Shown: positions 24,950 to 37,380 of the stretch, in pieces
Position numbering within the stretch: the stretch's first letter is position 1
Layout of the letters: each line of letters starts with the position of its first letter
Assembly: GCA_025201805.1 (NCBI GenBank)
Contig: MU619313.1
Span: 110,736 to 155,023 of the forward strand
Source: Parasitella parasitica NRRL 2501
Lineage: Eukaryota; Fungi; Mucoromycota
Direction: 5' to 3'
DNA: 44,288 nucleotides
Made by a program: the position numbers and the translations under genes
The notes under the pieces: generated by a model
The model's input: only the letters and a program-made list of their open reading frames with translations
The model's database searches: none
Told to the model about the DNA's origin: nothing

Positions 24950-27900
24950 TTAATCAATAAGCTTGGCAAATGCCATGGTATTTTTTGAAAAGTAGTCGGC
25001 AATGACATCAAATCCGTCTTCATCATGATCCAATTGGTCAAAGAACATATCGTGTCTGTCCGCATTGGCTTCCTGTGTCCTTCTGATCTCGCTAATCATA
25101 CGATGCTGGATAGCACATTGGGGACACTCTCTGTCGTTATCTCCTAGGCAGCTATTTTCAAACGAATTTGGTTGGCCAATCATACATTATCGCTTCGTCA
25201 ACTTTGAAACACACATACCGTTGATGATAAGAATGTCTGCACAAAAAGTGAATGGCAGGCAGATCCAGGTTACCCTCACAGCCTGTACATTTCTGCACTT
25301 GGAAGATGCGAGCACTGGGCGTCTGTGAGTCACGACGATTAAGCTTCCTCAAAGCCGCACTGCTTACCTGGTTTGCAATTCTTCGATCTCCTTTCTGCGC
25401 TTCTCTGTTTCTTCTCTGTAGCTCCTAATCAGCTCCTCGTTCTATCCACAGCTAATGAGTACTGCTGCATTTCAGAGTGTCAGTAGTATGTGCATACCTG
25501 CGTTAATTCCGCACGTTCATGCTTGATTCTCTTGCCGATATATCCCTTCAATAAGCCAATGGTGGCTACATTGGATCTCGACAAAGCTTGGACAACCTGG
25601 ATGGGAGGTAGCAAATCCTTGTCGTCAATGTGCTTCATAACCGATGCTAGTTCTTCGGTGGATCTAGCCATGACTTCGGGCGTGGAAGAAAAGTAGGTCA
25701 AAACCATGGGATACAGCGAGGAATCCTTTGGCCTAAATGAATGAACGCGGTGCACCCCTTATCAGCACAAATTTGCAACGAGAGAGAGAAGAAGAAAAAA
25801 AAGGAATAACGTACCCGTATTTTCTAACGCCTTCAATGACACGATCAGTTTGCCCCTTTTCCATCCAGTAGCGCAAAATGTCTGTATACATGCCCGTTTT
25901 TTCATACAAATAGACAATGCCCTCGTCAAACTGCTTCAGTTGACACAGGACTAGCGCTTGATTCGTGTCATAGTTAACGCTGTCGTCATGTAGCAAAGCC
26001 AGCGCCTTTTGACGGAGCTCTCTCTTACGTTTCTGTCGTTCACGGGCTGATGTAGGCTCTTTGATATCGTCCATCAGGTACAATTCCAGTAGGGTGTTCC
26101 AGATAGTCTTGCGCTCTTCCTGCTCCTGTGCAGACCAGTGGCGCAGTCCATTGACAATGGTGGCAGCGTCTGACATGGGCGATGTAATGCCTGTTGTTGT
26201 TGTTGTTGCTGGTGAGAAGCTGCTATTGCTGGCTGTGCCCCACAGCTTGTCAAAGACAGATTCCAAAAACGTGGTCAAATAATCAGGACGATCTACAAAA
26301 GCAGGCATAAATTTGCGGGGCGAGGGAGGAGAATAGCTCAAGCGTCCGCCTGCATTCTTTGTTTGTGCAAGCTTGCTCAATGTGGGTGTTTGCGAGCTGC
26401 TGTTATTGAGCAAGGTAGCGCTGTTTTCACTGAAAATGGAAGAGGCACTATCTACAGCCGAGGGGCCTCCAAAGGGCAGGTTTGAGAGAGCCTTGGTGTT
26501 GTCGCTGGGAGCAGGGGATTTGGGATCTGTCGGCGTTGTTGATTTGTTGACGGTGGCCAAAGGAAGCGTGCCAGTGCACAATTCAATCAGCAGTTGAGTT
26601 GTTTCTTCAGGCAAATGGCAGAGCAATGTTTTGCTGTATTTCTGGAGGTTTTTATCGGCTTCGTACGGGCCCAACTTTTTGATATACGTCAACGAAGTGT
26701 CGTATTTCTTCATGTCCTCAATCACAATATCGAGATACATGTCGTGTTCCTGAAACTTTTCGGCAAGATAAATGGCGTGGTCAAAATACCCAGCCTGTCG
26801 ACAGACACTTATTGCTGTTTCCAAGTCAAAATTGAGGTCGGTATCGGTTTTGATAAACAGGTCAAGGCGAGATACATCCTTCAGCTTGGTGTAACAATTC
26901 AAGAGCAGCGTTGTGTGGTCCGCATTTGCTAGTCCTTTTGCGTGTAATTCATGCAGATAGCTTGTCAGGTTATAGATTCTTTGGGCGTCTAGAAACTGTT
27001 GTATGTTTAGCTCACAAAGGACGCTCACATGATTCTGCCTACTGTTACCTTGCGAATAACATAAGAAGGCTCCAACTGCCCGATAGTGCGGATATACTGC
27101 TCCATGGAGCCGTCGTAGTCGCCCTTGCTGTACAGATGATCGCCGTATTTTTTGAAAATCTCAGAGATACTTGTGTCGTCGTATTTTTGCATATGCGCTA
27201 GATTAATAGCCAAAACGTACAGATTCAGTTTGAACAAGATTTCCAGTTTTGTTGGGGTGTCTTTTTCGTCCAAATGGTACAGCTATCAAGCGCCGTAAGT
27301 CTCCTCCTCCTCCAACACACACACACACACACACACATACGCCATAGACGCAATAGACGTTACCTTTCCATCCATGCCAACAATCCAAATCGAATTCCAC
27401 TCGCAAAATATGCCGCGAATGCCACCCAAAAAGGTGCCAACGTAGGCTACAAACTTGTTGGCTGTGTCGAAAATGGCAATCTTTGTAAGTTCGTTAGTTG
27501 ATGTTCTTTTAGGGTTGAAGTTGAGCGATGCACGCGCACCGCTTGACAAATGCGCTGAGGTGGTGACAGGAGGAGACACAATGACCAAATAGCTTGACTT
27601 GAACCATGTCAGCGATGATTTCGGTGTGTCATACGCAAAACAGGGGCCTCTGCCCGTGGGATCATACAAATAAATTGCTTCATCGCGGCCCACCACCATC
27701 TCCTGCTGATCATTCATGACTGCGCACCCCAATCCACAGCCCTGTTCATCCAAAACGGTGATGGAAGGCTTCACCGCCGTTGTGTTGTAGGACATGATGT
27801 TGCTGGTTGTCACAATGAACAAGATGGTCGACTTTGTTTGCTCTCTGAACCCGAGGCCTGTGATGGGTTCCTCCCCTTCGTAAATCACCTTTTGCTTGGT

Positions 27901-28677
27901 TGTTTTATCTTTGGATAGATCGCCACGGATCAAAATGACAACCCCGTTTGCTAATCCAATGGCGAGCTGTGACATGTTCTCCAGGATAGCAAATGTGGAT
28001 ACTGGATACGTCTTTCCGCCGTGCTGAATTTTGATGGTGCGAAGCAGAGTAGGCACAATGATATCATCCGTGCCTACAATAGGTTTCAGGGCATCCAAGT
28101 CCCAGAATTTTACGACTGGAATGCCTGATACAGCGTCATCCTCCTATCGTCTCCAGCCAGTCAGTGAAAAACGAACGCACACACGCTATTTCCATTACTC
28201 ACGCCAACTGTAACTAGCACATTCTTTTGTCTCAACTGCTTCATATGACTTACTCGGCCGCCGTCATATGCAAGGAACTTTTGAGTTTTGAACGAACGAT
28301 CGACAATATAAACACTACCTGACGAATGTGTTTAGCAAAAAAAAAGAAAAAAAGAAAAAGAGAGCTGGTTAAGGTAAATATCATCAAAAATGGTGCAGAC
28401 TATTAGTATCAGTGGTGCCTAATCTATTGGTAAAATAAAAAAATAAAAAAAGGATATCAGACAGTACGATATGGCCACGGCCAGTGGCGAAAACTGAAAT
28501 ATCCTGCTTCTATTTTGTGGGTAGCAGAAGAAGGTAAAATTATCAGGTCCTTGCCAACACGACTTGTTTTGCTAGTTTATATACCTGAAAGATCGCAGGT
28601 GTCTTTCCTTTCTCTACAGGATCTGTGGCCTGCTGTTTGTCAAAAAAATTAAACTGTCTCCATTGTGCCAAAGACAT
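24950..28677 (-). CDS. VPS11: Vacuolar protein sorting 11 (Pep5; HOPS/CORVET core subunit); multi-exon, includes one AT-AC intron
   Basis: N-terminus WRQFNFFD and beta-propeller; KYGDHLYSKGDYDGSMEQYIRTIGQLEPSYVIRKFLDAQRIYNL; DHTTLLLNCYTKLKD; RING CTGCEGNLDLPAIHFLCRHSYHQRCL...CPQC; terminal FDVIADYFSK. Confidence 0.95.
28328..28457 (-). other. U12-type (minor spliceosome) AT-AC intron, intron 2 of VPS11
   Basis: 5' splice site ATATCCTTT, branch site TTTACCTTAACC (28378-28367) and 3' end ...AAACAC. Removing it restores GRGHIVLS-D-SSGSVYIVD in frame. Confidence 0.9.
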
Positions 28678-37232: not shown

Positions 37233-37370
37233 ACTGTAGATGGTTTTTTTTTTGTTTCCATGCGCAACCTTTACAATATCGATATACCCTCTCCCCCCTT
37301 ACTCCTTGTGTATATTTTCGTCGTTGATGTTGTAGAGAATGGATTCTTTTTTTTTTCTTGTTTTTTTTTT

Positions 37371-37380
37371 NNNNNNNNNN
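37371..37380. other. 10-N assembly gap next to a poly-T run
   Basis: nnnnnnnnnn in the sequence. Confidence 0.95.

Follow-up and report, generated by a model that had tools for sequence, protein, structure and literature searches.

VPS11 and the anatomy of its second intron

The window, by which we mean the whole stretch of 44,288 nucleotides that was analysed, carries a VPS11 (PEP5) gene on its minus strand, and the second intron of this gene has the motifs of a minor-spliceosome (U12-type) AT-AC intron. Residues 1-1022 of VPS11 are collinear with P0068, the protein of Mucor mucedo whose gene lacks this intron, as found by tblastn against the window. VPS11 is single copy, its 270-aa exon having one match in the 32.8-Mb genome, and elsewhere the gene is intact. 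An (AC)11.5 microsatellite (GT on the gene strand) lies at 27315-27337 of the window, in the VPS11 intron 3' of the 270-aa exon. The features of the gene that concern us are the following.

24950 to 28677, minus strand: VPS11 (PEP5) coding region, with ATG at 28677 and stop at 24950 (open reading frame list and tblastn with P0068)
28585 to 28677, minus strand: exon 1, 31 codons, MSLAQWRQFNFFD...IFQ (direct reading and tblastn)
28510 to 28584, minus strand: intron 1, an ordinary GT-AG intron (GTATAT...AATAG) of 75 nt, at the same place in relatives
28458 to 28509, minus strand: exon 2, KQDISVFATGRGHIVLS and the first base of a D codon, ending ...CTGTCTG at 28458
28328 to 28457, minus strand: intron 2, putative U12-type AT-AC intron of 130 nt, phase 1 (motifs, frame and orthology)
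28449 to 28457, minus strand: U12-type 5' splice site ATATCCTTT, in agreement with the consensus /RTATCCTTT
28367 to 28378, minus strand: TTTACCTTAACC, the region around the branch motif
28368 to 28375, minus strand: branch-site motif ACCTTAAC, with 28369 or 28370 as the putative branch A; aligned by MAFFT with its orthologue CCCTTAAC in Parasitella
28337 to 28364, minus strand: pyrimidine-only run of 28 nt, including a CTTTTTTT-like tandem array
28330 to 28336, minus strand: GCTAAAC, a U2-like or weak U12-like branch motif, 2-5 nt before the AC and 11-14 nt before the CAG that ends at 28319
28328 to 28329, minus strand: 3' terminal AC, the putative 3' splice site, 41 nt from branch A 28369
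28319 to 28321, minus strand: CAG, an alternative in-frame acceptor whose use would lose D-S-S
28203 to 28327, minus strand: exon 3, which completes the D codon and continues SSGSVYIVDRSFKTQKF...VTVG

The preliminary description of this DNA had given the exon end ...CTGTCTG, the donor, the branch motif at 28378-28367 and the terminal AC, and every one of these strings and coordinates proved correct. The U2-like GCTAAAC (28336-28330) and the in-frame CAG ending at 28319, with its deletion of three residues, are likewise present as described. The motif ACCTTAAC matches the consensus TCCTTRAC at seven of eight positions, the first being A and not T, and the U12 candidate found in the genome has an AAGGA box to which it is complementary. 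The 8-mer RTATCCTT is not significant when taken alone, with five occurrences in the window against 3.3 expected, and therefore the case for intron 2 rests on reading frame and orthology. The other four sites (9088, 14730, 37407 and 42208) come without a branch motif and without exon context and were set aside as chance matches; a run of N, an assembly gap, is found at about 37370-37380 of the window, just upstream of one chance match to ATATCCTT. A subclass of U2-type introns also has AT-AC ends, with a donor that is like the U2-type consensus except for an A at +1 and that pairs with U1 and U6. The donor ATATCCTTT lacks that consensus and this class was rejected for intron 2.

Reading through intron 2 meets a TGA at 28386-28384, and the in-frame 3' sites upstream of the AC at 28328 all run into a TAA at 28334-28332. 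Joining 28458 to 28327 gives GRGHIVLSDSSGSVYIVD. When every in-frame combination of GT, GC or AT with AG or AC was enumerated, only the pair 28457/28328, giving GRGHIVLSDSSGSVYIVDRS, produced a peptide of orthologue length that is collinear with the intron-less orthologues. These served as rulers, Mucor mucedo (P0068, L060) reading GRGHIVLADSKGNVYIVDRS and the locus L007 reading GRGYIILADSKGNVYIVDRS. In the tblastn alignment the donor coincides with residue 49 (D) of P0068, and residue 50 aligns at 28325, so that nothing is lost or gained by the AT-AC join. This enumeration bears out the earlier claim that an AT to AC join keeps the D-x-x-G of this part of the protein and that no GT donor does so. 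The product of the AT donor with the CAG at 28319 has three residues deleted. For database searches the queries were single exons or database protein identifiers, and exon joins were used for frame tests only.

It might be supposed that the major spliceosome, aided by GCTAAAC and the new pyrimidine tract, removes an overlapping GT-AG intron and that the U12 signals are relics of a conversion to the U2 type. Two in-frame GT-AG pairs do exist (28462..28315 and 28478..28319), the 28-nt pyrimidine tract followed by CTAAA and an AG resembles a U2-type 3' region, and the U2 snRNP takes part in the splicing of certain minor introns whose branch sites are weak (Jacquier et al. 2022, PMC8848931). However, the donors of these pairs, GTCTGA and GTGGCC, are poor, and splicing at them would remove 6 or 10 residues from a propeller strand that is conserved and found in all orthologues. 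Moreover, both ATATCCTTT and the branch motif are intact, and AU-AC introns of the U12 type are reported to be poorly recognised by the major spliceosome (PMC10853781). Removal by the major spliceosome is therefore, in our judgement, very improbable.

Orthologous introns and public gene models

The 270-aa exon is 83% identical to a protein of Rhizopus stolonifer, and the DNA of the locus is closest to that of Parasitella parasitica GCA_000938895.1 (78% over 4.5 kb), with Mucor-like loci at about 70-72%. Judged by these identities, the source of the window is a Mucoraceae mould, related to but distinct from assembly GCA_000938895.1. A scan of metagenomes for closer relatives returned six loci, none of them close.

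A phase-1 AT-AC intron occurs at the same site of VPS11 in 11 loci, and in all of them it ends AC|AT and its removal restores D-x-x-G. The distances given below are from the putative branch A to the AC.

Parasitella parasitica (L059): intron of 85 nt, branch CCCTTAAC, 15 nt
Rhizopus arrhizus and R. delemar (L033, L036): intron of 66 nt, branch TCCTTGAC, 12 nt
R. stolonifer (L006): intron of 81 nt, branch TCCTTAAC, 13 nt
Mucor-like contig (L040): intron of 65 nt, branch TCTTTAAC, 10 nt
Mucor-like contig (L038/39): intron of 83 nt, donor ATATTCTTT, branch TTCTTAAC, 17 nt
Mucor-like contig (L041): intron of 96 nt, branch TCCTTAAC, 22 nt
Umbelopsis (L008, L062): intron of 96 nt (L008), branch TCCTTGAC, 22 nt
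Gigaspora margarita (L061): intron of 116 nt, donor ATATCCTTG, no clear branch motif, TGCTTAAC at 50 nt

The donor ATATCCTTT is identical in eight orthologous loci and is replaced by ATATTCTTT in one pair and by ATATCCTTG in Gigaspora. In the intron-bearing orthologues other than Gigaspora the branch motif stands 10-22 nt before the AC. In the pair L038/L039 (JGI 3300046675), ATATTCTTT and TTCTTAAC each carry C-to-T changes, with which G-U pairing to the snRNAs would persist.

The comparison of orthologues that had been proposed thus finds an intron of the same position and type in Rhizopus, Mucor-like contigs, Umbelopsis and Gigaspora, and its loss in Mucor mucedo. The loci without the intron, L060 of M. 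mucedo and the Logan contig L007 (SRR16940102), read GRGH/YI..LADSKGNVYIVDRS. As read from the DNA, they are precise losses of the putative U12-type intron, with the neighbouring GT-AG introns kept. The full-length, transcript-like Logan protein P0066 represents the intron-less form and its source is an intron-less relative. The deposited model of an Umbelopsis sp., P0085, uses exactly the AT-AC junction. A metagenome contig (L064, Ga0170475_132637014) contains, in bases 14-420, a Glomeromycota-like VPS11 that is intron-free across both N-terminal sites, where its sequence is ...GRGNIILADSSGYAHIVDRS...; a spliced RNA from a metatranscriptome may be its source, which would agree with AT-AC splicing at this site.

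Many of the public VPS11 models are wrong at this intron. These include the models of L033/L036 (P0037, P0038), L006 (P0001) and L059 (P0074), and further P0072, P0084, P0086, P0149, P0102, P0106, P0108 and P0148. The errors are of several kinds: a start placed inside the intron (MGNRQLYF...), exons 2-3 skipped, residues invented, or read-through ('...ADIL...'). The string '...ADIL...', which is the translation of G|ATATCCTT, is carried at this place by the models of Racocetra, Acaulospora, Gigaspora and Actinomortierella; the DNA was inspected for Gigaspora only, and the string suggests that the intron is also present and read through in Racocetra, Acaulospora and Actinomortierella. It could be used as an easy marker of G|ATATCCTT introns that annotation has not recognised, and fixing this one site would repair the models of an otherwise conserved HOPS/CORVET subunit across Mucoromycota. 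In Phycomyces, Backusella, Blakeslea and Lichtheimia VPS11 is correctly modelled.

Minor-spliceosome components and other U12-type introns of the genome

An intron of this type implies a working minor spliceosome, as the preliminary description had pointed out, and a search of the genome returned candidates for all four minor snRNAs and a match to a minor-spliceosome protein:

U11: 68.7 bits against a cut-off of 39, above it
U6atac: 64.5 bits against a cut-off of 33, above it, with the AAGGAGAGAA box intact
U12 (L001): 49.1 bits against a cut-off of 53, full length, with GAGUAAGGA and the Sm site intact
U4atac (L005): 47.9 bits against a cut-off of 53, full length
PDCD7 (U11/U12-59K): 35 bits against a cut-off of 27, above it

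With the Rfam gathering score set at 53, standard annotation would miss both the U12 and the U4atac candidate. No match to zf-U11-48K (PF05253; cut-off 21.1) was obtained in the genome with a model of 25 positions searched exon by exon, a search too insensitive to be informative. Minor snRNAs and a few U12-type introns are known in Mucorales from earlier work (PMC2396436, PMC2846911, PMC10639083); a minor-spliceosome system in this group is therefore not new. With these candidates, the motifs of the intron and the presence of a same-phase intron in relatives from three orders or subphyla, the U12-type identity first proposed for intron 2 is upheld.

Other U12-type introns in the same genome were sought with a strict pattern (RTATCCTTT, a gap, TCCTTRAC), the reversed pattern serving as control. 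The strict pattern had 24 matches genome-wide against 5 in the control, and 13 of the 24 are short putative introns flanked by open frames on both sides, the donor and the end of the branch motif being 60-93 nt apart. The 3' sites of these 13 AT-AC introns and of two GT-AG candidates were inferred from the reading frames. From the branch A to the nearest frame-consistent AC the distances in the 13 are 11, 11, 11, 12, 12, 12, 13, 14, 15, 16, 20, 25 and 26 nt, and in L052, one of the GT-AG candidates, the 3' end is 16 nt from the branch. AT-AC ends predominate overwhelmingly among the U12-type candidates of this genome: 23 of the 24 strict matches begin with ATATCC, and the 13 credible short ones are AT-AC without exception. 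Among the U12-type introns of animals and plants, GT-AG is more frequent (PMC3584512).

The two longest distances among the AT-AC introns belong to L019 (G000:C46:14148-), at 26 nt, and L028 (G000:C102:61551-61643, minus strand), at 25 nt, the spacer of the latter containing a T13-G-T5 run. At least 16 pyrimidines directly after the branch motif were found at two loci genome-wide, VPS11 and L043, and at none in the control. The second of these, in a prefoldin-like gene (G000:C7:210120-213215, intron from about C7:211620), is a GT-AG candidate with a U12-like donor GTATCCTTT and the branch motif CCCTTAAC. Its AG follows the branch A at a distance of 32 nt and its spacer of 31 nt is mostly pyrimidine, which would make it a second stretched case. 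VPS11 would thus lie at the far end of a range of distances that is tailed even without it, and this hints at relaxed spacing in the lineage.

In two further candidates, L013 (G000:C23:204078-204167) and L023 (G000:C73:73765-73837), about 30 and 19 T respectively follow directly after the ATATCC donor. T-runs seem to expand freely inside these putative U12-type introns.

The stretched spacer, proposed splicing and nearest known systems

[quoted passage not shown] 2013, PMC3584512). A well-defined distance constraint has been described for minor introns, and a short branch distance has been linked with reliance on the minor spliceosome (Olthof et al. 2024, PMC11347168). Intron 2 of VPS11 departs from this in two features that are typical but not defining: its spacing is 41 nt and it contains a 28-nt pyrimidine run.

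The distance is 15 nt in the nearest relative, Parasitella (L059). When the closest loci were aligned with MAFFT, the branch motif of the window aligned with that of Parasitella (..gatgatatt..CCTTAACCA), after which Parasitella has 12 bases to the exon and the window 38, the approximately 26 extra nucleotides being CT-rich. Tandem Repeats Finder reports at 28339-28363 an array of period 8, with 3.1 copies and 94% matches. The extra 26 nt or so thus correspond to the CTTTTTTT-like tandem array, which points to slippage. The distant branch and the pyrimidine tract, both noted at the outset, are real departures when set against 10-22 nt in the orthologues and 11-26 nt in the AT-AC introns of the same genome. 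On this comparison the predicted 41-nt spacing is derived and an extreme outlier, at about three times the usual distance. The first reading of intron 2 as an atypical minor intron can be kept in the sense of a U12-type intron with outlier spacing; for the accompanying idea that it is in transition to the U2 type, the presence of the tract is the sole support.

There is no A between A28366 and A28333, and consequently, if the AC is used, the branch must be at least 38 nt away. The spacer has no purine past the AG at 28366-28365. This AG lies 3-4 nt beyond the predicted branch and is too near to it for use. An RNA structure that would shorten the path to the 3' site was considered and rejected, since the predicted fold of 28300-28470 is no more stable than those of shuffled sequences (z = 0.64).

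The usual spacing would be regained if intron 2 were an AT-AG intron of the U12 type, with donor ATATCCTTT, the branch in GCTAAAC (A28333-28331) and ligation at the CAG at 28319, yielding a Vps11 without D-S-S. The resulting 12-14 nt fits the known optimum, the CAG is in frame, and U12-type 3' ends are flexible, non-canonical termini being on record (PMC3584512, PMC10639083). Against this, GCTAAAC fits TCCTTAAC poorly and its predicted pairing with U12 is weaker. In duplex energies with the 5' region of U12, ACCTTAAC is about equal to the Parasitella site and exceeds GCTAAAC, a comparison of little weight given that the method is unconstrained and finds pairing for the 5' splice site as well. 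AT-AG combinations are also disfavoured (PMC3584512), and AC|AT is conserved in all intron-bearing orthologues. The three codons at stake are themselves kept: D-S-S-G is as in Umbelopsis and near the D-S-K-G of the intron-less relatives. Taken together, these points make the AT-AG intron an unlikely alternative.

It could also be that the long spacer impairs splicing, with retention or mis-splicing and a low VPS11 output, or that an assembly error has produced its apparent length. A distance constraint of this kind has been established in animals (PMC3584512), and the tract is of low complexity according to Tandem Repeats Finder. However, assembly is unlikely to have gone wrong by some 26 nt in so short and interrupted a tract, and T-rich spacers of 20-26 nt elsewhere in the genome and in relatives suggest tolerance. 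In addition, the sole copy of VPS11 is otherwise intact across 1022 aligned residues, and a productive splice must therefore exist. We regard impaired splicing or an assembly error as quite improbable.

We put at roughly three in four the probability that intron 2 is a U12-type AT-AC intron with branch A28369/70 and ligation at the second AC of ...AAACAC, and, jointly, that it was inherited from the common ancestor of Mucoromycota. In this proposal the U11/U12 di-snRNP would recognise ATATCCTTT and ACCTTAAC, the lariat would form at A28369 or A28370, and ligation at the second AC of ...AAACAC (28329-28328) would give ...HIVLS-D-SSGSVY.... Replication slippage would most likely be the process that expanded the CTTTTTTT-like repeat between branch and 3' end, taking the distance from about 15 to 41 nt. 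Because the spacer is purine-free, no AC or AG would compete before GCTAAACAC, and this may explain how the 3' site is still found. What the sequences show directly is the layout of intron 2, the logic of its reading frame, its orthology, its insertion and the occurrence of minor snRNA candidates; the use of the AT and AC ends, the position of the branch and the efficiency of splicing are our inference. We lean towards accurate AT-AC splicing of this intron of an essential gene, a tract of pure pyrimidine separating the 3' site from a branch at least 38 nt away.

If this is true, the minor-spliceosome spacing rule of 10-20 nt would not be intrinsic, at least in Mucoraceae, and the choice of the 3' site may fall on the first AC that can be used after a spacer devoid of purines; further stretched cases, at 25, 26 and 32 nt, occur in the same genome. 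Should RNA data confirm accurate splicing to the AC with the branch 41 nt upstream, the intron would be a notable variant. Relatives that differ almost only in the spacer (15 versus 41 nt) would also provide a natural test of a distance rule that has been established mainly in animal systems. The intron appears to be old, being found in Mucorales, Umbelopsis and Gigaspora, and its precise loss in some Mucor lineages would make it a marker for minor-intron loss. A literature search on VPS11 and minor introns found no paper linking the two.

The assignment of VPS11 intron 2 to the U12 type is supported, at the level of sequence comparison, by donor, branch motif, termini, orthology and machinery. 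With the canonical U12-type AT-AC introns (PMC3584512) it has in common the /ATATCCTTT donor, a TCCTTAAC-like branch motif complementary to U12, AT-AC termini, a non-zero phase and candidates for U11, U12, U4atac and U6atac in the genome; it differs from them in its 41-nt spacing and 28-nt tract, where the canonical introns have their optimum at 11-13 nt and normally no tract. The U12-type introns of Mucorales reported for Rhizopus oryzae and Phycomyces (Bartschat & Samuelsson 2010, PMC2846911) and for Mucor lusitanicus and Rhizopus microsporus (Larue & Roy 2023, PMC10639083) belong to the same group of fungi, with the same machinery and the same intron type. The minor-like and hybrid classes of Olthof et al. 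(2024, PMC11347168) are alike in combining minor signals with a major-type polypyrimidine tract, a likeness that is qualitative; those classes are defined by weight-matrix scores for the minor 5' splice site, the minor branch site and the major-type tract, whereas the VPS11 intron has a perfect minor 5' consensus and AT-AC ends, with which the major spliceosome copes poorly. Nearest of all are the orthologous VPS11 introns of Parasitella, Rhizopus spp., Mucor-like contigs and Umbelopsis spp., which share codon position, phase, ends, donor and an alignable branch motif, and which differ in having spacers of 10-22 nt (15 in Parasitella) where the window has about 26 nt of additional CTTTTTTT-like repeat.
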